Of a DNA stretch of 64,000 nucleotides, positions 13,640-26,917 are shown piece by piece (positions within the stretch are counted from its first letter, which is position 1; each line of letters opens with the position of its first letter). The stretch covers positions 1-64,000 of the forward strand of contig OZ025744.1 of assembly GCA_964019335.1 (NCBI GenBank). Direction: 5' to 3'. The position numbers were made by a program, and so were the translations under genes. The DNA is from Diplonema japonicum (taxonomy: Eukaryota; Protista; Euglenozoa: Diplonemea). Under the pieces are notes generated by a model. The model was not told where the DNA came from, ran no database searches, and was given only the letters and a program-made list of their open reading frames with translations.

Positions 13640-16600
13640 TTACCGCTCGAAATGCACCTGAGCAATGTGTCCGGTGATGGTGAAGAAGTGATAAGCCGCC
13701 CTGCTCTCGTCGCTGTCGAGCATAACATGTTGAGTGATGTTGCAAGTCAGCAGTGCGTTGCCCTGCATGGAGTGCACAATCCTGCGGATCACGTGGTGTG
13801 CCTCAATGGTCTGGTAATGGAAGAAAGTGCCCAGTCCGCCTTGGTAAGTGTTGCTGCTATGTACTTTTTCCGTCTCTCGAAGGAAGTGGTGAGATAGATA
13901 ACCGAGGTACTTAACAATGCTCGCCCCTGCCACGTAGTCCATCGGTGTGATGGTGACGCTGTGCGTGTCGGGCTCGTTCATAATTCCCTGTGTGTGAGCT
14001 ATAGAAAGACGTAACAAAAACACACCTTAGAAAGTTCCTGTGTCATGACATAACTCTCTCCCCTCTCCAACACCCTCGCACACGGTGATACTGCAGCAGG
14101 TGTGATGGTGTCGTAGCTGAAGCAGAATGGTGACATCGCCTGTATTTTGTAATAAAAAAAAACCCCATGTGCACCATACCTGTAGATAAGGTGTCTCCCA
14201 CTTGTCTATTTTCGAGTATCTCGTTAACTTCTTGCTCTTTCTCTTTGTGACGGGTGACATTGGATCGAATTCTTCAAACTCGCCGAACACATCACTCGTG
14301 TTCGTGCCTTGTCGCTTCAAACCACCGTCATCAGCCTCGTCCGGTCGCGTCATGAGCCCTGTGAGGAGCTGCTTGGGTCGCTTCGGAGACGATTTCCTTG
14401 TCGGCGACGCTGGCGGTAGCCCTGAGTCACACCTATACATTGTTCTGAAGTCCTCAACAGCGCTTCCGGACAGTCTCTTCTTCCCTTCTCTGCCCCTGAG
14501 TGAGTTCCTGTCTTGAGGGAGATGCATTGGCGAGTGCCCGCCCTCCCTCAGCTTCCCCCTCGAAGTTCCTTTCCGTCTCAAAAAGACTCTTGTTTCTGCT
14601 GTCGCGGGAACAAGGCCGCTCCAGCTGTTCCGTTCCAGAGGCATCTCAGTCTCGCCGCTCTCTTCGACCAGTAGCCTGTACTTGCCCCGTTTTGTCATCG
14701 CACCGTAAATCGACCACATGTACGGGTCGCGTGCTGGCTCGTCATCGTTTGTTTGCAGCTGCACCTCCGTCACGTTGATGGGCTCCGGAAGCCGAAGAAA
14801 CTGCGGCTGGTCGAGCTTGAGCTCCAAACGCGCCGTCACGAAGTCAGTCGGCACGCCATCCTGCAGGTAGTGCACTTTTAAGGCTCCGATGAAACATTTT
14901 TCGTACCTGCCTTCCCTCATCTGCGTCACGGAAAGCCTCAGGAACATTACTTTCCCGTCGGCGTGCAGCTCTCTCTTGTAGTAATGATGCTGTTCCATTT
15001 CAGAAAGGAACGAGGACAGGCTGCCCTTGTACCACGCGCTGTTGTTGTGCGGTGTGAGCAGCACCCCCATGATGCGCAGGTTGATATCGTTGTCGCTGGC
15101 AAAACTGACTTCAGACTTGTACGATGCTAGCACGCAGTCGCTGGGAGAACAGAGCTGGCTAGCCACCTTGTGGCGCAACACGCTGTACATGTGCTTGAAG
15201 AGGTCATTGATCCTGTGCAGCGAATGGTGGGAGTGGAATTCGAACCTACGCTGTATTGTGATGGTGTGACTGGGAACGAGGTTCACGGGCGAGGCGCTGA
15301 AGGTGTCGAGATTGATGATGGTGCACTCGTCATCAGGAGCTGCGGCGTCTTTATCTATAGCCGGCTCCTCGATGTCCACCACGTAAGGCTTCACCCTGCT
15401 GTTGTGCGACCCCGACACCGCAAAGTGGTCCTCCGACCCCGACTGCGATGAGGACTCGCTGCTGTTGCTTGAGCTGCTGGACGAATCGCTGCTTTCGTCC
15501 TCACTTTCGCTTGGGGATGACGTGCCCGGTCCGGCTGTGGGGCTCCCCTTGTCGTCCTCTAACTCAACTGTCATCTCTGGCAGGTCAGACGTCCTGTCTT
15601 TCGGCGATATTCTGCATGACACGGCTGCGTTGAAATAGTCTAGGTTTAAGACGCTGGACTTTAAACTCACCTGTGTTGTTTCTTCCCCTTTCAGTGCTAT
15701 ATGCATACTTCAAGCACACGGTGTGTCTGGTTCTCCTCATGCACCAATGGGAGGCAAGGGATATGAACAGCTGTCGCTGTTGCCGTCGCGATAGCAAACA
15801 AGGCACCGACCCGGATATCAACACGCAGACCAAAGGCGGCGTTGTATCCATTCTTTTGCACCTTTTTTTTTTTAAACAAAGATTTTCAATACATTTTTTA
15901 ATTTTCATACTTTGTGGATGAGTTCTCTGTGCACATTGTACTCCAAGTGCGGAAGTGCTTTACTCACCTCAATTGCCAAGGACTCTCCGCTGCTGGAATC
16001 CTTCTTCTTCACATAGCGGGCTTCTACCAATCGGGGTGTACCCTCGACAGGCATGTCTGGGGGAATCTCCATGTTCGCGAGTAAGAAAGCAGGAACAGGC
16101 TTTTTCTTGCAGTTAAGACACTTGACGAGGACATTCTCACCGGCACCTGCGGCCATCTTAACGTCTGTGGTCGGGATGTGCGCTATGCGGCACCAGTCTC
16201 GCTTCTTCGAGTCGCCCTGTTGCTTACCATATTGCTTCTTCAGCACCTTTGGTATCGGCCACATGAAGGCGCCCCAGTCGGCGATGACGGCCGTTCCCGA
16301 TGCTGACAAGATGCAGATATCCTCGTGGAAGGCGGTGGCTTCCGTGTACCCTACAACCGCGTTGCAACAGAAATGCCTCGCGTTTGCTTTGATCTCCTCT
16401 CTGATCTCCTGCCACCAGGAGTCCCTCTCCTGCACCACGGCCTTCGTTTTGAGCTGCGTGATCAGCTTGATGGACCTGGCGGACACCACACCACCTACCC
16501 TCTTGACAACGTTGCACGGCAAGCTTTTTATTGTGAGAAGCTTTGTGTTTTCCTTCATTAGCTGGTGCAGGTTCCGCATGTGTCGTCTCCGCCGCGTGTC

Positions 16601-17500
16601 TTGGTACATGGCAGGGTGCTCCAGAAGGTCTTCCGGACCGGAGCCAGTAGGAGACTTGCTTGAGTCTTCCTTGACGACCTTGGAGATCTGGCAGCACGTG
16701 CCGTATGCGCGTATGATGATGTTGCCGCCGGACGGCTCAAGGTCGTATTGCTCTTTGAAACCGAGGATGCAGTTGCAGCCGTGCTCGATGGTCTTTTTGG
16801 CCAACATGCGTCGGACGTTGCCCGATGCCTTGAAGAACTGGAGGATACGTTGGTCGTTGGTGATCCTGCTGGAACGGAGGGACTGGAGACGCGCGTGTTC
16901 CGGATCATGTCGAAGGGCAAGCTCCTCCACCATACCGACAACCTTCACAACCCTGTAGATGGCGGGGTCTAACCTGCTGACAGCGAAGATCATCACGCTC
17001 TCTGTTTCCGCGGCAATGGAAGCGACCTTAGGCTCCTGACGTTCGTCCTTAACATCGCTGTCCTTGCACTCGGGGATCCATGGGATGAAGGGGTTGGCGT
17101 TCTGGGCTCCATACATGAACTTGATGTGGACAGAGAGGAAGAGCTCCCCACGTAGCCCGCGCATGCTGTCGAAGATAGGGAACCATGCCGCAAGCTGGGG
17201 CTGGTCGGTGCACAGCAGCACGTTGAGGTCAAGGAACACGGTTCCGATGACATCGTCTGCAGTCCACTTGTCATGGTCCCACACCTTCACTTCAAAGGGG
17301 TCCTCCTGCAGCTCTGCATAGTCGGCAATGTCGAAGGTCACCGACTCGTTCCACTGCGGGTTCAACGTCCTCTTTGCGATGCGTGTTTTCTTCGTCTGAT
17401 CGCAGTGCTTTACCTGCACATACGCATCTGTCAAGTGTGACTGGCTATCCATGATCGGCAGGTCTCTCGCCGCACTTATTTTAATCTTTACTGTTGCCAT
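13640..17500 (-). CDS. C2CD5: C2 domain-containing protein 5-like (C2 + YbjQ-like domains), 5 exons
   Basis: N-terminal C2 (ARDLPIMD…TDAYV…TLNPQWN…VWDHD), ERDSWWQEIREEIKANA, CNAVVGYTE. Introns 15862..15910, 15671..15708, 14140..14179 and 13988..14025 join the ORF pieces in frame. Confidence 0.8.
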
Positions 17501-18375
17501 GCTTGCGTTCCGCCCCTTTCTTCTTTTTTTTTCTTTTTAAATCCCCAACCTTATGTGTGTTGCTATCTTTTAAAAATTGGTTGGTGGGGGGGGGGGGGGG
17601 GGGGGGAAGGAGGAAATAATGGGAAAAAGTCAATGTGTACTCCCCCCCTTCCCCCTACTAGTCATAAAATGGTCAAATTCGCACGCCCCTACTTTTTTCT
17701 TTTGGATGGTTTTCTTTTTTTTTTTTTTTTTTGAAATCTTTGCTGAACCGGAACACAGAATAACATTCTGTTTAAGGATTTTCTTTAGCTAAGAGAGGTC
17801 AAATTTTCTTGAGCATTATTATGAAAGGTGGGGTCAAACTACCGAGGGTTTCCTTTTTTTTCCACAGAAGTACACTTGAGCATTTATGGAAAGTAGGGGT
17901 TCGTGGTGACAGTTTCCTACAACAAAAAATAGAAGAGAGAAGAGAAAAGTCCTCAAAGGAGGGGTGGGTGGGTTTGAAAGGTGTCGGGGAAGGGGGGTGA
18001 ACCACTTTAAAGTAAGAAAGTTAAAAAAAGAAGTATGTGTCAAATAAAAAATGTTTAAAAAGTAGGGGGGGGGGGGGGGGGGGGGGGTAAGGAGTGAAAA
18101 AGCCAAGTTATGTCAAATTTGTTAGAATTCATATTGTTTCTTTCTGAGATTTTGGTTTCTGTTGATAAAGCCATATGTACATGTATTTTTAATTGTTTTT
18201 TTTTTTCTTTCCCTTTTTTCTTTTTTTCCAAGTCGCCAGAAAACTAAAAACCTAAGATCTCTCGAAAAGAAAAAAAATATGAAAGAAAGCAACTTGTTTT
18301 CCTGTGGTTTTCTTTTTCTTTTTCTTCTTTCCTTTCCTATCGCAAATAAGTAAAAGTGAGTTATGAAAAACAAGT

Positions 18376-18575
18376 NNNNNNNNNNNNNNNNNNNNNNNNN
18401 NNNNNNNNNNNNNNNNNNNNNNNNNNNNNNNNNNNNNNNNNNNNNNNNNNNNNNNNNNNNNNNNNNNNNNNNNNNNNNNNNNNNNNNNNNNNNNNNNNNN
18501 NNNNNNNNNNNNNNNNNNNNNNNNNNNNNNNNNNNNNNNNNNNNNNNNNNNNNNNNNNNNNNNNNNNNNNNNNNN
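18376..18575. other. Assembly gap (200 N)
   Basis: Run of N that truncates the NB-ARC/WD40 gene. Confidence 1.
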
Positions 18576-21500
18576 CCACAGCACCACCACACCGTTCTCA
18601 TACCCGCTCACAATGTAGTCCTTGTAGAACCCCACACACGTGCAAGGGATCCCCTCGAACGCCACCTTGCTGGTGATCTGCCTCAGCCACAGGAAATGCT
18701 TGTCGTGCGGGGTCGCTGGTCTAGACTGTTCCTGCAGACCGGAGCAGAAGTCCTTCAGTTCCTGCGACGAGCTGCAGGACAGACGGTTCACCAGCTGCGG
18801 CACAAGCTCCCAAGGGTGCCTCCTCAACGCGGCAACGGCTCCCTTCAGAGCTGACTTAATGTCCTGTGCGCCCTTCGAGGTGCCGCCGTACTTGCCGTAG
18901 TCAGCGAGAAGCTTGTCGATCTTGCACGAATCGTGCACAGCTACAACCCACTGAGGAGATTCGAAGAGCTTGGCAGTGAGCTCGGGGGCGATGGCATGCA
19001 GATGCCCTGCGCCATGAGCATGGAAGTAGCCATCCCAGCCTATCTGCAGCCACCTCTCAGGTTCCATGTTGTCCTCAGGGATCCCGTTGTGCTGCCTGTA
19101 CAGCTCGATGACTTCGGCGTCAGAGTTAGTAGAGAGCTTCTTCAGGTACTTAGCGATCAAAGGATGCAGCAGCAGAGAGTAGTCCTCCTCTAGGACAAGC
19201 CTCCCCATCCCGCAATCCAGTATCTGCGCCAGTACAGCATACAGCTTGTTCCAATCGATCCCACCGATCTCGCTGTGCCACAAAGTGAGGAGCGCAGGGA
19301 TTGACACAGCACGCTTCGGGGGGATGCATGCAAGCTTCTTCAAGCACGTCGCAGTGAGCTCGGGTGTAGCATCCAGCAGGATTTCCATCAGCTTGTCCAT
19401 GTCACCATCAGTTTCCGACACGTCTTTGCTGAGCTTTTCCCACTTCGCGCTGTCGGCGCCACGCATGGCAGACCCCAGCATCACGGCGTGGAGGGGGAGA
19501 GACTGGTATACCTTGCAGATAGATGTGGCCACCTCGGGGAGGTCAGCAGGCCCCAGTAGGCCTGCGGACGAAGAAAGGAGCTTGTTGCATTCTTCTTCAG
19601 TCAGTCTCGGAACATTGACAGTGTGCATGCAGGCATCTGCCACCTCCTTCGACGTGGTTGTGAGCAATACTGCCGTCATGGGCTTTTCGTTCTCGTTGGA
19701 TCCGATGGCGTCTACAATCCTGTGCACGTCGGAAGCGCAAGCGACATCGTCGACAAGGATGAGGCACTTGAGCCCAGCGAAGTGCTTTCCCAAGTAGTAG
19801 GTTCCATTCTCGTACGTCTGGAGCATGCCTTCAAAACCGCAGGCATGCCTTGCAAGTGTCTGCTGCATGTTGCTGATGAAACGCGTCCCCCCCGCCTCAA
19901 GGTTCTCCAGCGTGTCCCTCAAGCAGAAGTAATGAATGCCGTCCGAGAAGCTATCGAGGCTCTCCTTCGTCCACGCCACGCTTAGCATCATCGACGCCTT
20001 CCCGACGCCCTTGTCGCCGTAGAGTGCTACGGTGACGTGCTTGCGCTCCGCAGGCTTCACGAAGCCAACGATTTCATTCTTCAGGCCCTCCCTCTTGCAC
20101 TCATGCATGTACGCGGGGGTCTCGGGCGTGTCGCGTGGTCGGACAGCTTTCTGTACGGCCATAGCCATCTTGACACACCCTTGGTGGTAGGCAGGGTCGT
20201 TCAGCGGGTCCTTTAGTAGCAGCCTGACCTTCTTCGATAGGAAGCGGTAGATGGAGTCGACTGTCATGTCGCCGCAGTGGAACGGGCAGATTTCCAAGTC
20301 ACCCGACGTGACAGGCGCCACCGTGGGCATCATCCCGAAGCCGCCACCCATTCCTCCCTGTAGTGTGGTGGATCCGTGCATCACAAGCATACCAAGCCCT
20401 TGTTCGACAGACTCTTCCACAGTTCTGCGTTAGGGTCACGCTTCTCGACCTCTTTCAGCCCCGCAAGGAGGAAGTGCACGAAAGGCCCGTTGCGGATCTT
20501 GGAGGGCTTCTCAGTCTTGTCCAGCTGCAGCTCTGCTGACATCTCCCTCGGCATAGAGTCGGGTCTCGTCATACCCACGACAGAGCACTGTGTTTATGCT
20601 GTACGAAGAAAACGATTTGCATACCCTCTGGCTGTTTACGATCCCTGACATAACACCTGTTCTTCGCAGGAGCTCCGACATGGGGACGGGCTTCCCGGGG
20701 TTGGGCAGGTCTTCACCGTCGTCGAACTTGATGTCATCCTCACCAGTGTGCACAACGTCTGTGAGCAATAAAGACAATAGGGTGAGGCAGCCATACCAAG
20801 GATCACAAAAAGCTGCCTGAAAGGGATATCAGAGACTTTGTTAATGAGCTCGACCATGTCGATCCACACGGCATCCATCTCCACTGCGGTGGTGGGTGGT
20901 GGGGTGCTATAATACATACTGTCTTGTCGCATGAGGAACTCAAGCGTTTCGCTCTTCTGGTTTGCGTAGGTAGTGACACGCACCTTGGTTGCTAAGTACA
21001 GCAGGCAGTTCTCCCAATTAGCTGGGTTGGGCTTCTTGCGGGTCGCGTCGTCATATCTGCCATCCTTCAAGCTGCGGAGGAGAGTCGCAAGGTTCAGCCT
21101 TGTGGGGAGCGTGGTGTTTTCGGTGACCGACTTATGCGATTTGTAGTCCTGCAGCGTGAAGGTGCGGTAGTCGAGCTTGGCCATCGCCTCCGACAAGTCT
21201 CTGGCGTCAATGCCGCACCTTGAGTTCTTCTTGTTCTCCTTTTGCGGCGTTGGGTCTTCGATGCCAAGGAAGATGCCCAAGTGGGGTTCCCTCGGGACCT
21301 CCTGGTGCTGTGCCAATATCTGCTCGGGTGTCAACAACTTCTGCTCTTCTTCAGAGTCGCTGTCGCTGTTTTCCTGCTTGTCAGCGTAGCGCTTCACAGC
21401 GGCAGCAACCTTCGACTTCCCTTGCATCTCAATAGGCAGGTCTTTCTTCTGAAGCGGCTCAAGATTCTGTTTTGTTTTTGTGTAGTAGTAACAGTTACAG

Positions 21501-21727
21501 TGCAGGCATACCCACTTGACGCGTCTCATCTTCCTCGGCTTCCTTCCCTGTGTTTCCGCCCCATCCTGTCCTGCCGTGGCCTTGTTCTTGGCGAACAGCA
21601 CTATGAGGAACGGAACAGTGACGATCAGGATAAAGACAAACGCGAACACCATCAACGCTGTGGGCAGCCAGGCCGACATGTCCCCGATGACGGACAGCAC
21701 CACCTTCGTGAACTCATCTGCGTCCAT
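18576..21727 (-). CDS. TM + inactive caspase-like (peptidase C14) + NB-ARC + Apaf-1 helical + WD40 STAND protein (3' end in gap)
   Basis: Exons 21727-21512, 21466-20797, 20758-20625, 20587-20393 and 20357-gap, joined by GTATG..CAG introns, give ~1000 aa in frame. Motifs: GDKGVGKAS, FSDGIHYF, CLILVDDV, LLTTT, QSLPL, LLLHPL, DGYFHAH…HL, IVSGYENGVVVLW. Confidence 0.8.
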
Positions 21728-21810
21728 TGGTTTGTCACCTCCACCTTTTCTTTTTGTGTCCTTTTTTCCCTCTTTCCTGTTCTTTTTTTTTTTTTTTTTT
21801 TTTTTTTAAA

Positions 21811-22887
21811 TGGAAGGAAGGCAGCGGTGTGTACCCTGGAGACATGCAGGAGGGAACAGTGTTGCACGTGCATCGGAAAGGTGCTGAACTGAAGACCAGA
21901 ACTTTTACAACAAGCGCCAAGGGAAGAAGGCGTTGGGACTGGTGGGAAACCTGAAGCAAAGGTGCGCCGACCAGTTCTTCATCCACCCACGGGGATGGCG
22001 GACGGACGCAGTGACATACATCCCACCGACGGAGGAGGAAGTGGACGAAGAAGATTCCCGAGACGACTCAGAAGACGAAAAAGAAAGAGAGGCGGGAGGA
22101 GAAGGGGAAGTCGCTGGAGCGCATGCTGCCGGCGGAGCAGGACGAACCCGCAACGGCACACTGCGACATATGCGGTCAGATACCCAACATCCTGGAGCAT
22201 GCACTGTGGGAGTGCGAACCTGGCGGAGGAGTACGACAACGGGAGGCACATGCAGGCACGACACGAACAGGCCTAGAACCGTGCATGAGGCTCCACGGCA
22301 TCCTCCCGAGGGAAGCGGCCAAGGAGGACAAGGACAGGCTAGAGACCAATGGCTGGAGATCACGGAGGGGGAGACACACCCAGCACCAACAGAGGAAGAG
22401 TTTGCAAAGCTGCAGACCGGCAACATCTGCTGAAGTGGCTCAAGCAGCTGCGCTGGTATGGAGGGAACAGAAACACGGCAGTGTCGACGGTGGAGCTGGC
22501 GCTGGACTTCGAAAACGTGAAGTCCCTTGGGGGGAAGCTAGGGGAGTTGGCTGATGTGCGACAGAAGGCCAGAGGACACGGTGATGAAGAAGGTGTGGAA
22601 CACTTGGGAGCTAGGGAGGGTGAAAAGAAAGAGGCGAAAGGAAGGAGGGCCTCCCTTCTGAACCACGCAAGAGAGTACATACGCTGCGATCAATCGGAGG
22701 GACGAAGGCGGTGATCGGGTGGAGTAGAAGAGCAATGTTTGCATCAACGAAGACCAAGTACGACCTGGAGGAGCTGGGGAAGCAATGGGCAAGGGAAAGA
22801 AGGGAAAAAGTGGCCAAGCTAGGAAGGAGGCCGGCACGACCACCGAAGGAGAAACCGCTGCTGAAACACATAAAAATCACGTTATAA
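21811..22887 (+). mobile_element. Degenerate 3' fragment of a non-LTR retrotransposon
   Basis: Frameshifted pieces (CDICG…HALWEC, CMRLHGILPR, WLKQLRW…VSTVELALDFE…QKAR) are colinear with the C-terminus of the RT ORF at 23840..26772. This is the only + strand coding-like sequence in the window. Confidence 0.8.
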
Positions 22888-22916: not shown

Positions 22917-23309
22917 TTATAAAAACTGATACTGCTCCTGCAGTTCTTGTATGACCAGCACAACATCGTTCTCTCTGTCAGACTGGGTGGGGTGCTTCAA
23001 GGTGCGGGCAAGGGTTGGGGACAAGCTGCGGATCAGATCGGGTCCTGCGGTCGGGATGAGATTCGTGAGCAGGAAGTACTTCCACATTCCATCGTCCGTC
23101 TCGAGTACACGCTGGACAGCTGCCTGGAGTTTGACCCCAAGCCGGCTCAGCCGACTGCACACCTCAGCCGCGACAGGCCAGTTCATGTCTTGCTGCCATT
23201 CAAGTAACTCATCGATTTTTTCCAGCACCTCCTCATCACCTGCACGCAGGAGGTTCGCACAAGCTACGTCATCATGCTTATTTTCCGGAACTATCTTCAT
23301 TTCACTCAT
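22917..23309 (-). CDS. DUF5071-like protein (bacterial type)
   Basis: IVPENKHD…LLEWQQDMNWPVA…VLETDDGMWKYFLL matches the DUF5071 pattern from memory; intronless, 130 aa. Confidence 0.8.
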   Translation of the reverse strand: MSEMKIVPENKHDDVACANLLRAGDEEVLEKIDELLEWQQDMNWPVAAEVCSRLSRLGVKLQAAVQRVLETDDGMWKYFLLTNLIPTAGPDLIRSLSPTLARTLKHPTQSDRENDVVLVIQELQEQYQFL

Positions 23310-23546: not shown

Positions 23547-26500
23547 TGGCATTACATAAGAAACACGCAGCCATCAAAGGCACATACGCCGATTGGCAGA
23601 AAAGAACGGGCCCGGCCTGCAGTTGCCTTTAGAGGTTATAGAATAGAATGAGCCATCAGGAAGAACACCATGGAAAATTCATCAAAAAACCCTCATCGTT
23701 GAGTAATCGCGGCTCTGCTCCCCGTCGGCCGGATGAACTCCTGGTGACTGCGGTGTATGATACATTGAAACAAGAATGAAAATATAACTCATAGTAAAAG
23801 ACAATCCCACTCGAGGACAGCCTCTTGTGGTGTGAGTTCCTATCTATTAATGCTCCCCTTCTGGAGCATAGCCTTCGTTCCTATTGTCGCCTTTAAAGCT
23901 TTTCGTAGTCTCGACACGCGTTCTTTCTTGTATGTCCCTTTCAACTCCTGTAGCTTTTGCGCTGTCTGTCTTGATGCGAAGATCGGTCTCCTGTTAAAGC
24001 CTATTGCAGCCTTGCCTCCAATCGCTGTGAGCGACTTGACCCTCTTTGCCCCGTCCGCAGGGAAGGGGCGTCTTGTTCTGCACACTGCGTTGGCTCTCTC
24101 CACCAACAGCTTGATTCTGCGTGCCTTCCTCTGCATGTTGTAGACTCCCAGTGACTTACCGGTTGTCTCCTCAAAGTCGAGTGCAAGTTCAGCTGCCGAA
24201 ACCTCCGAGTCGGTGTCGCCCTCCACCCATCGCAGCTTTCCCATCCATTCCAGTAGTGGTTCCCCGAATTGCTCCAGCAGTCCCACCACTGTCCCCAGCT
24301 GTGCTGTCGTCGGTACCGGGGTCACTTTGCCTGTCACTTCCCGCTCCCATGGTAGCTTCTTGTTGCCGCCTTCTGCCTGCATCAGCCCTTCGTCCCGCTT
24401 TTCCACCACCATTGCCAGGTATCGCTGCAGCTTCTCCAGGTGTTCGAACCCGTTCCCCCTTGGTAGGATGGCATGCAGCTCGAGGCAGAGCGGCCATCCC
24501 GTCCTGTCGCGCAGTGGTTCCATCTCCTCCCGTATCAGCTCCTCTCGTGCTGGCGGGCACTCGTACAGCTGGTGGCGTAGCAGTGTTACTGTGTCCGCAT
24601 GCTTGGTCGGGCAGAGGTCACATTCAAATCCCGACTCGTCTTGTCCTTCATGCGCCGCTGGCTCGTCTTGATCTTCCTCTTCTTCGCTCCGTCCCCCGGA
24701 CTCGTCGTCCTCATTCGTGGGGGGTACACACTTTGGTCCTGCTCTGGCATACGGACTTAGGTAGGGGATCCCTCCCGCAATTACCCTCTTGATACAGAAA
24801 GCTAGATGGCGATCTTTAGCTGTCCTCCAGAGGTCATTCGTTTTGGGATCTGCTCCTTCCCCGAGTCCGCTGACCGTCTTCCGTTCCGTTGCTAGTGTCG
24901 CACTCCTGGCTGCCCTTACAGCCGCCCTGAAGGCGCTTCCTCGCTTGGGCCACTCAAGTTCTGTGGCTATTTCCATCTTCTCCCAGTCCCATCCGATTCT
25001 CGGCATCCACCTGCATATCAGATTCCCCACCGGTCCCAAGGGGGTCCTCTGTGAGCCGTACCTCTGCACTATTTGTCGCACTCTCTGTCCAAGACCTGTC
25101 CTTTCCAGCGCGCTCGATATCACTTTTAGCGAGTGACAGATGACGTAGGACAACGGGTCATTGATGTGTCCTTTCAGCAAAACCGTATTCACCGCCGCAG
25201 GCGATCGTCCTCGGAAGTGAGGCCCCCATAGGTTGCAGGTCACTCTCGTTGTTAGCTTCTTCAGCGCCTCATCACTCGGAGGGGAGAACGGGCTGCTGTA
25301 GAGGCACGACGGCAAGACCGATGTTCCAATCAGGTATCCTTTTGTTTCGAAGGACAGGCTTGTCCCTCCCAGCCGGTCTAGCTTGTTGGCCGCTTCCGTC
25401 GCTGGCTCGTTCCACGTCGTTCCTGTCCTGTTCGTGAACACCATCACGCCCAGTGCCTTGAACGACGTCACTGTTCTATAGGGGACTGCGACCTCTCTCC
25501 CTTTCTGTGTTACTGTCCTATCACCCAGCACTTTTGACCGGAAGCCCTTCTTCGTGCCAAACGCTACCGTTTTCTCCGGGTTAAGCTTCATCCCAGTGAG
25601 TCCGCAGAACTCCAAAGTTCCGTTTACCGCAGCCTGCAAGGTCTTCTCCAACTCTGCCAGAAGGTACGTGTCATCTGCATAGGACAGAACCTCCGTTCCA
25701 GGTGCTTCCTTCTCGATTGTCCTGATCATCACCGCCAGTAAGGCGTTTATAATGATCACCGACAGCGGGCACCCCTGGAGTATCCCATTCGTTGCTTTAA
25801 AGGTGGCCCCTATTCCTATGGGGAACTTGAATCTCCTCGAGATTTGCCCGTACATTCCTTGGAGTGCTCGTGCGATTGCTGGGTCTAGTCCCAGGGCCAG
25901 CATCAGTTCGTGCGACAATTGTTGCGGGACCAGGTCGAAGCACTTCCTGAAGTCCAATGCAAGTCCTTCTAGCGGCTCGTCCTCCACCAGTGCCAGTTCT
26001 AGCTTCGTGCATAAGTCAATCAGCGCCGAGGTCGTGCTGTGTTTAGGCCTGAAACCATGTTGTCGTGGTGTGATCCACCTCTCCTGCCATTTCAGTACCT
26101 GCACCAGTCGTGCACTTGCCCACAGCCGGTAAATGGTACTGGTCACTGTGATCGGTCGGTGATCCAGAGGTGCCGTTCCTTCCCCCTTTGGGATGAGGGA
26201 TACGAGTGCCGTCGTGACCTGCATCGGCCATTCGCCCGTCTCCTCTATCAAGTTGAAGAGGTCCGCAAACGCTTGTAGGATCGGAGCCGGCAGGCGCTTC
26301 AACTCACCAATCCGCCAGCCGTCCACGCCGCATGCCCCCTTGTCCGCTTTCTTACTGATCACCTCTTTCAGCAGCTTGGCGTCGATGGGGGCGTGTGCCA
26401 TCGGGTTGCTCTTGATGTGCTCACCGTACCGTCTCTGGAACTCGTCGAACTGCGGCTCGTCTTCTGGTGTTCGTGCGCAGAAGATGTCCGACCACGCCGT

Positions 26501-26772
26501 CCGCATCACTTTGTCCATCTTCTTCAGGTTGGCCGTCACTCCCCCGTCTGCTGCATCCACTGTTTGTGTCCCTTGCTTGGTGCTGTTATTCATCCAGGCC
26601 GTCACGTGCCTTCTCTCCTTCGCGAAGTTTGTGCGGATCGAACGTTCGTAGGCACGCGTTTGTGCTCTTTTCCTGCTCGTTATCAGGTCAGCAAGCTCTC
26701 CCTCGGTGAAGCATTCAGCCACTTCTAGGTCCTCCTGGATCACGTCTACGCTCTCTGCGTCGTCCACACGGC
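23547..26772 (-). mobile_element. 5'-truncated non-LTR retrotransposon: uninterrupted RT ORF, CCHC finger, C-terminal domain, ~290 nt putative 3' UTR
   Basis: GVDG, LIPK, RPITV, QHGFR, LDFRKCFD, GILQGCPLS, YADD and LNPEKT motifs; CDLC…HQLYEC; stop at 23840. No N-terminal endonuclease. Boundaries approximate. Confidence 0.9.
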
Positions 26773-26917
26773 AATATAATATGAAAAAATAAAAAAAAAC
26801 AAAAAAAACAACAATACATTCGGCTCTCCCCCCCCCCCCCCCCAGAAAATTCATGCTCTAATGAAAGAGAAGAGTGAATAAAAAACAAGAAAGCCGCCCC
26901 CCCCCCCCCCCCCCCCG

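Follow-up and report, generated by a model that had tools for sequence, protein, structure and literature searches.

A predicted membrane-anchored protein joining a caspase-like domain without catalytic residues to an Apaf-1-type ATPase in the diplonemid Diplonema japonicum

The locus and its gene

A 64,000-nucleotide stretch of Diplonema japonicum DNA (assembly GCA_964019335.1, contig OZ025744.1, positions 1 to 64,000; hereafter, the window) carried on its minus strand a gene whose coding sequence started at 21727 and ran into a block of N at 18376-18575. The encoded protein, of about 1170 amino acids, comprised a short tail, a transmembrane helix, an acidic linker, a caspase fold that has lost its catalytic residues, a linker with the motif CPFHCGDMTVD, an NB-ARC domain with Apaf-1-like domains, and a short WD-type beta domain. 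An earlier note on this DNA, made from the sequence, had described the gene as a membrane-anchored pseudo-caspase with an Apaf-1-like ATPase.

Starting from the ATG at 21725-21727, the joined pieces formed one reading frame with six exons and five introns, and the exons before the gap totalled 2961 nucleotides (987 codons). Public contigs from two runs, X1 and X2, were aligned to 18576-21900; run X1 was labelled only "probable RNA" and was 98-99% identical to the window. One X1 contig (1188 nucleotides) omitted exactly 21467-21511, 20884-20919, 20759-20796 and 20588-20624, each bounded by GT..AG on the minus strand; it also spanned 21512-21745 (exon 1) and exon 4 from 20402. Contigs of X1 and X2 spanned most of exon 5. 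Spliced RNA is almost the only conceivable source of a contig that lacks these four short segments, so the gene is expressed and spliced.

Eight full-length orthologues, consisting of seven transcriptome proteins from six species and one D. papillatum gene model, served for comparison. They measured 1175-1289 amino acids and came from Rhynchopus humris, D. papillatum, Lacrimia lanifica, Flectonema neradi, Sulcionema specki, Namystynia karyoxenos (two diverged copies) and Hemistasia phaeocysticola. The full-length orthologous transcript proteins agreed with all exon junctions.

The gene was made up as follows, from its start to the gap:

21512..21727, minus strand: exon 1, 72 codons, with the short N-terminal tail, the transmembrane helix and the basic segment RKPRKMRRVKW (X1 contig)
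21467..21511, minus strand: intron 1, 45 nucleotides, GTATG..CAG (omitted by the X1 contig)
20920..21466, minus strand: exon 2a, acidic linker followed by the caspase-like domain from strand beta1 as far as the beta-hairpin (X1 contig, AlphaFold model of exon 2)
20884..20919, minus strand: additional intron, 36 nucleotides, GTATGT..CAG, in frame (omitted by the X1 contig)
20797..20883, minus strand: exon 2b, continuing the caspase-like domain with helix alpha3 and strand beta4 (RQLFVIL) (X1 contig, AlphaFold model)
20759..20796, minus strand: intron 2, 38 nucleotides, GTATG..CAG, splitting the Asp codon of LFVIL-D-VVHTG (omitted by the X1 contig)
20625..20758, minus strand: exon 3, beginning with (D)VVHTG at the position of the caspase Cys motif D-x-C-H-S-G (hhalign register, X1 contig)
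20588..20624, minus strand: intron 3, 37 nucleotides, GTATG..CAG (omitted by the X1 contig)
20393..20587, minus strand: exon 4, 65 codons, CSVVGMTRP ... NGPFVHFLLAGL, candidate p10-like half (X1 contig from 20402)
20358..20392, minus strand: intron 4, 35 nucleotides, GTATG..CAG, inferred (frame logic and eight orthologous proteins)
18576..20357, minus strand: exon 5, 594 codons up to the gap, with the conserved linker, NB-ARC domain, winged-helix domain, helical domain and first WD-type blade (Pfam, orthologue, contigs)
18376..18575, no strand: assembly gap, 200 N, concealing the last ~185 codons and the 3' end (sequence)

All five introns began with GTATG, ended with CAG and measured 35-45 nucleotides. 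The intron at 20884-20919 was overlooked in the raw open reading frame (ORF) because it is in frame, and the raw ORF read through intron 1 for the same reason; the 12 read-through residues of the former were missing from orthologues and the 15 of the latter from all orthologues. The earlier note had counted four introns, one fewer than the X1 contig revealed. Three of its four were exact, and the fourth, 20358-20392, was bridged by no RNA contig. Removal of this intron from the mature transcript was inferred from orthologous transcripts and frame logic: it has the GTATG..CAG ends, exon 4 left unspliced would reach a TGA after five codons, and the eight orthologous proteins were continuous over the exon 4/5 junction (...KGL-GGMGGGFG...). 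The contig breaks of both runs all lay within 45 nucleotides of intron 4, which intron retention or an alternative 5' end may explain. The single joined frame that the earlier note had proposed held, both in the spliced X1 contig and in orthologues reading across the junctions.

The gap cut the gene, and comparison with orthologues indicated that about 185 C-terminal residues were missing from the window copy. A contig of X2 extended 692 nucleotides beyond 18576. No copy of the C-terminal part was found elsewhere in the 62.5-Mb assembly, and the last ~185 codons were therefore placed in the gap.

The caspase-like domain

Two features defined this domain:

20742..21283, minus strand: caspase-like (C14-like) p20 half, HLGIFLGI ... 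VVHTG, with two introns inside (hhalign, ESM atlas, Foldseek, VIA)
20981..20992, minus strand: ATKV, end of strand beta3, where caspases have the catalytic His (SGHG); no His in any orthologue

The N-domain of the eight orthologues, compared by hhalign with 12 metacaspase domains of the same genome, aligned over 174 columns with a modest P value (0.0014) and a score of 32.6; none of 60 column shuffles exceeded 26.0, the reversed alignment reached 16.9, and an NB-ARC negative control gave P 0.11. The alignment placed GIFxGVD on ALLIGINY, RCxxDARD on GCxNDV, PTR on PTK, YLaTRVR on HFSGHG and LDVVHTG on MDCCHSG. In the ESM atlas, bacterial Peptidase_C14 families made up 28 of the 30 clusters closest to the Rhynchopus protein segment 125-470 (score 0.92, in a search where scores of 0.9 or more arise for 4-10% of shuffled proteins), with 139-154 shared features, under the usual 170. 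An AlphaFold model of exon 2, built with the orthologues as alignment, showed the order b1-a1-b2-a2-b3-hairpin-a3-b4 at moderate confidence (predicted local distance difference test, pLDDT, 66.9; predicted template modelling score 0.57; pLDDT of the other four models, 40-56).

Matches of the exon 2 model to known structures all pointed the same way. The listed Foldseek matches in the PDB were all of caspase fold, namely 3bij (GSU0716; 8.9e-4), Arabidopsis metacaspase 9 (AtMC9; 1.3e-3), caspases 2, 3 and 9, MALT1 and Dronc. The first 27 rows of the all-against-all VIA search were likewise all of caspase fold, led by Yca1 (Z 9.4, root-mean-square deviation 3.5, 124 aligned) and including caspase-2 (Z 9.0), caspase-3 (8.4), caspase-1 (8.4), MALT1 (7.5), legumain (6.9), c-FLIP (6.0) and Raptor (5.9); generic alpha/beta folds appeared only at Z 5.5 or lower. 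The three lines of fold evidence were not fully independent, because all learn from sequence. Caspase-fold matches were obtained within the region between the transmembrane helix and the P-loop, and the first, p20-like half of the N-domain was accepted as a predicted C14-like caspase fold, on profile and model evidence. A conserved insert, GxYDDxTRxKPN, preceded strand 3. Pfam searches with single exons and orthologues gave no CARD, TIR or other named N-terminal domain.

The catalytic dyad was absent. Strand b3 ended in YLATKV(R) where caspases read SGHG, and strand b4 was followed by DVVHTG where they read D-x-C-H-S-G. All eight orthologues read YL[AS]T[RK]VR and D[VC]VH[TD]G, so that, as the earlier note had claimed for the window copy, both the catalytic His and Cys were gone, here in every species; the Cys of the Lacrimia protein stood one position ahead of the catalytic site. 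As the dyad was absent in all species, its loss dates to the diplonemid common ancestor and has been kept since.

The p10-like half (exons 3 and 4 and the start of exon 5) gave no hhalign signal in local, greedy or global mode, with shuffles. A second atlas search with it scored 0.80, which is noise level, and the full-length model had a pLDDT below 50 there. Matching CSVVGMTRP, NGPFVHF and MMPTVAPVTSGDL by eye to metacaspase p10 motifs was a guess resting on motif spacing, and the earlier note's assignment of NGPFVHFLLAGL and GDMTVDSIYRFL to caspase p10 motifs was not demonstrable by hhalign or atlas. A complete six-stranded caspase fold is thereby a candidate only, the profile and model evidence being limited to the p20-like half. 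The caspase-type region of the earlier note accordingly stood for that half (hhalign, atlas and model matches), the p10 motifs staying candidates; Pfam C14 did not match.

Membrane anchor and topology

21590..21670, minus strand: transmembrane helix WLPTALMVFAFVFILIVTVPFLIVLFA (hydropathy, matching segment in 8 of 8 orthologues)

The N-terminal helix, already noted in the first reading of the sequence, was confirmed by hydropathy (residues 20-46; mean Kyte-Doolittle value of the 19-residue core, 3.13), by the charge of its flanks (net +6 on the C-side, -1 on the N-side) and by the matching orthologue segments. Under the positive-inside rule this charge pattern predicts that the large C-terminal part, and with it most of the protein, lies in the cytosol and the short N-terminal tail outside. 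Three hemistasiid orthologues (P0011, P0012 and P0013) had an extra N-terminal hydrophobic segment, signal-peptide-like, and a helical stretch of about 35 amino acids before the transmembrane helix; the signal-peptide-like N-terminus fits the same N-out, C-in topology.

Conserved linker, ATPase and C-terminal beta domain

The following features lay in exon 5:

20256..20288, minus strand: CPFHCGDMTVD, core of the protein's most conserved stretch, with C, H and C invariant (alignment columns)
19410..20075, minus strand: NB-ARC domain, Pfam PF00931 (45.9 bits against a cut-off of 23.5)
19992..20018, minus strand: Walker A, GDKGVGKAS, with Ala after Lys where Ser or Thr is usual (sequence)
19743..19763, minus strand: Walker B, LILVDDV, canonical (sequence)
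19158..19175, minus strand: LLLHPL, assigned by the earlier note to the MHD position of NB-ARC, with His kept and Asp replaced by Pro (position)
18576..18617, minus strand: YIVSGYENGVVVLW, strands of the first WD-type blade, after which the frame enters the gap (orthologue P0004 has WD/beta-propeller Pfam matches at this place)

The NB-ARC match covered exon 5 residues 95-316 (E 5.6e-12) and reached 48.1 bits in the genome scan. A GLPL-type motif, SLPLH, was present. The Ala of GKAS (codon 19995-19997) was peculiar to this species, the orthologues reading GK[ST]S, and contigs of X1 and X2 (near-identical strains) agreed with the Ala codon. The motif L[LI]H[PE] was conserved in orthologues; its equivalence to MHD is by position, not by alignment.

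The full-length model of the Rhynchopus orthologue was confident over residues 480-1166 (pLDDT 70-92). Its best Foldseek match was full-length Apaf-1 (3sfz; E 2.6e-23, 886 columns), followed by Dark, plant NLRs and CED-4, and it aligned with Apaf-1 1-591 (1z6t) over 521 columns (template modelling score 0.57). By sequence the nucleotide-binding domain (NBD) was remote from known proteins (best phmmer match NRC2, 2e-4; Apaf-1, 1z6t, 0.2). Beyond the helical domain, the orthologues had a C-terminal beta part of about 210 amino acids, which formed about 15 strands in the model and gave weak WD-type Pfam matches. The NB-ARC, the Apaf-1-type helical part and the first WD blade of the earlier note were all recovered by these searches, and the motifs it had quoted lay where it had placed them.

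Conservation peaked in the linker that follows the caspase-like domain and precedes the NBD, and continued to about 20090 (CPFHCGDMTVD ... DPAY ... RPRDxPxTP ... HEC). The linker matched no family; its conserved Cys and His could bind a metal.

Orthologues and distribution

The orthologues were 1:1, with 49-73% identity across the sampled diplonemids, except in Namystynia with its two copies. Exon 5 shared 73% identity with a Diplonema ambulator transcript protein (P0001), and exon by exon the identity to D. papillatum was 39-82%; the D. papillatum orthologue, KAJ9466669.1, was annotated just "putative WD repeat-containing protein". These matches identified the euglenozoan host that the earlier note had supposed as a diplonemid. 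The search for orthologues and active paralogues that it had proposed yielded the former, in other diplonemids, and not the latter: the N-domain profile, run against 1.84 billion representative proteins, found diplonemid orthologues only, with no bridging relative and no active (His/Cys) version. No relatives came out of pattern scans that covered bacterial genomes, archaeal genomes and JGI metagenomes.

The 62.5-Mb genome contained two NB-ARC matches, and the studied gene was the sole one with this architecture. The second (NB-ARC 5.3e-6) was an ORF of 1133 amino acids (L024:2541-5939, minus strand, on contig C59), adjoining a tubulin-tyrosine-ligase gene; it resembled the studied gene over 119 NBD residues alone (hhalign 3e-8), and its 250-residue N-terminus had no assigned domain. 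Peptidase_C14 matches in the genome numbered at least 21, and 10 of 12 extracted domains retained SGHG/AGHG and D-x-C-H-S-G. In six long ORFs with C14 matches the partner domain was C2, DUF3089 or none, never NB-ARC; as none of the six had NB-ARC, no active caspase-STAND paralogue was found in the genome.

The ordinary metacaspase homologues varied. Two identical C14 domains formed a tandem pair 3.5 kb apart (L005 and L006, C34:364949-365701 and 368404-369156), and other C14 loci were L015 (C11:141500-151400), L016 (C55) and L021 (C12). Variants included an ORF of 1485 amino acids with up to three C14 stretches, a C14 plus DUF3089 fusion (1385 amino acids) and a C2 plus C14 fusion (707 amino acids). 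Altered sites occurred in two ordinary homologues: L012 read SGHA and FDTAYG, with no Cys, and L010 read DCAHSG.

Comparison with known systems

Animal caspases and Apaf-1-type ATPases cooperate but are separate proteins, joined via CARD domains. Apaf-1 (3sfz, 1z6t, 5juy), Dark and CED-4 shared with the studied protein the succession from NB-ARC to winged-helix and helical domains and on to a WD-type C-terminus. Unlike Apaf-1, the diplonemid protein had no CARD, a dead caspase fold standing in its place, and it had a transmembrane anchor in addition; its C-terminal beta part was about 210 amino acids in orthologues, whereas Apaf-1 has two propellers, of 7 and 8 blades. The studied protein is not an Apaf-1 orthologue.

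Bacterial caspase and STAND folds are frequently fused. The order was the same as in the diplonemid gene, from caspase-like effector to STAND ATPase to repeats. A passage of PMC7539657, citing Leipe, Koonin and Aravind (2004), describes bacterial orthocaspase domains fused N-terminally to STAND NTPases with WD40 or TPR repeats, and fusions of caspase-like domain and STAND ATPase have been described in bacterial conflict systems (Kaur et al. 2020, PMC7159879). These effectors are presented as peptidases, and no mention of inactive ones was found in PMC7159879, whereas the diplonemid dyad was lost in every species; the studied gene was also eukaryotic, with five spliceosomal introns and a transmembrane anchor.

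Among type I metacaspases (Yca1, 4f6p, and those of the same genome), Yca1 was the top VIA match of the p20-like half, and the motifs were in profile register. The studied domain differed from them in falling below the Pfam C14 threshold, in lacking the catalytic His and Cys, in the GxYDDxTRxKPN insert and in an unrecognisable p10. The long form of c-FLIP (3h13) and Raptor (7pqh) offered examples of a caspase fold without a working dyad that serves in pairing or scaffolding, but their sequence and context were unrelated; c-FLIP has DED domains and no ATPase fusion. The nearest solved NB-ARC by sequence belonged to plant NRC-type CC-NLRs (8rfh, 9fp6; phmmer 2e-4), which differ in having LRR sensors, a CC N-terminus and large, variable gene families. 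The multi-copy, fast-diversifying pattern of an NLR repertoire was not found, with two NB-ARC matches in the genome and 1:1 orthologues outside Namystynia.

In the literature searched, no paper connected NB-ARC proteins, Apaf-1 proteins or a caspase-STAND fusion with diplonemids, and within that literature the combination of transmembrane anchor, dead caspase domain and Apaf-1-type ATPase was undescribed in eukaryotes. It is a conserved and expressed eukaryotic protein with both folds in a single chain, in which the protease part has been inactivated and a membrane anchor added. To our knowledge, the control of metacaspases outside animals is unknown and no STAND partner of theirs has been found. 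Diplonemids are among the most abundant marine heterotrophic protists.

Proposed role and competing explanations

The protein was best explained, by analogy and with a probability of roughly 0.6, as a membrane-bound oligomerising scaffold, probably for metacaspase signalling. Because a caspase fold without its dyad cannot cleave, its likely role is protein-protein pairing, for which the pseudo-caspase c-FLIP, which pairs with caspase-8, is a model. If the protein works as Apaf-1, CED-4 and plant NLRs do, the ATPase would be kept closed and ADP-bound by the C-terminal beta domain; a ligand or stress signal would then trigger nucleotide exchange and assembly of a ring-like oligomer on the membrane, clustering the dead caspase domains. 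These might pair via the caspase dimer interface or the substrate groove, and the paired domains might recruit and activate, or restrain, one of the many active metacaspases of the genome. With two NB-ARC matches only, a sole gene of this architecture and good conservation across diplonemids, the protein resembles a diversifying NLR immune receptor less than it does a conserved regulator of the Apaf-1 type or a housekeeping scaffold. It offers a testable candidate for a metacaspase-regulating platform in a lineage that has a model species, D. papillatum.

Several results weighed against this explanation. Pfam PF00656 (Peptidase_C14; cut-off 21.4 bits) matched no exon and none of the orthologues P0004, P0005, P0006 and P0002, even at E 10, and the studied gene was absent from the PF00656 scan of the genome. 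The N-domain profile found no caspase among PDB sequences, only a chance match (E 1.2). The full-length AlphaFold model had a pLDDT below 50 over the N-domain, and was for that reason uninformative on the caspase question; the moderate exon 2 model and the silent p10-like half counted on the same side. In the ATPase, the GKAS form of Walker A may weaken the handling of Mg and ATP.

An alternative that keeps the architecture as described makes the protein a housekeeping membrane scaffold, perhaps in trafficking or in the assembly of flagellar or signalling complexes, with no part in death or immunity; its caspase fold would then serve structure or binding, like that of Raptor (TORC1). The absence of a paralogue with the same architecture, the identity of 49-73% across sampled diplonemids and a dyad lost already in the common ancestor, all unlike arms-race receptors, would suit it, as would the ordinary neighbouring genes and the presence of the Raptor domain among the structural matches (7pqh). 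The ATPase half, however, best matched Apaf-1, Dark, CED-4 and plant NLRs, which are death or immunity switches, and the genome holds many active metacaspases as possible partners; this alternative was rated a serious competitor, though less likely than the metacaspase scaffold.

A bolder version of the metacaspase scaffold would make it an apoptosome-like switch for death or stress in diplonemids, a membrane-tethered caspase-ATPase fusion whose dead domain templates the activation of free metacaspases on the ring. This specific role was considered doubtful. If true, eukaryotes would have a counterpart of the bacterial caspase-STAND conflict systems, and a STAND ATPase would for the first time in any of them be linked mechanistically to metacaspases.

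It is improbable that the region between transmembrane helix and ATPase is some other three-layer alpha/beta domain, Rossmann-like or flavodoxin-like, with a chance likeness of motifs. The missing Pfam and PDB sequence matches, the second half without signal, the atlas background and low shared-feature counts, the model confidence and the generic alpha/beta folds from Z 5.5 down would agree with it, but three methods converged on one family with both catalytic motifs in profile register, and all listed Foldseek matches and the first 27 VIA rows were of caspase fold.

Least probable by far, for all that the contigs of both runs broke at 20358-20392 (ending at 20402, 20335 and 20358) and that a D. 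ambulator Trinity ORF called complete began with MGAGGFGMM just past the exon 4/5 junction, both of which also count against the single-chain scaffold, were two products from separate or alternatively processed transcripts, a membrane pseudo-caspase (exons 1-4) and a soluble NB-ARC-WD protein starting at a Met near the start of exon 5, since all eight full-length proteins crossed the junction, intron 4 shared the GTATG..CAG form of the four proven introns, and the contigs had no spliced leader or other loose end at 20357.

Neighbouring genes and other observations

The large ORFs between about 7800 and 30600 were all on the minus strand, resembling a one-directional gene cluster. The same-strand neighbours of the studied gene encoded a DUF5071 protein of 130 amino acids (22920-23309, minus strand; 3.9e-24) and a C2CD5-like protein with C2 and YbjQ_2 domains (15908-17500, minus strand; 6.1e-51). 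Two genes upstream, on the same strand, lay a reverse-transcriptase ORF of 1004 amino acids (23843-26854, minus strand; RVT_1 3.3e-24), probably a retroelement. Homopolymer runs of A, T, G and C occurred in the intergenic segments 17500-18250 and 21730-21800, and appeared in the ORF tracks as poly-P, poly-G, poly-K and poly-F; the assembly break at the gap fits a homopolymer tract bordering the N run.

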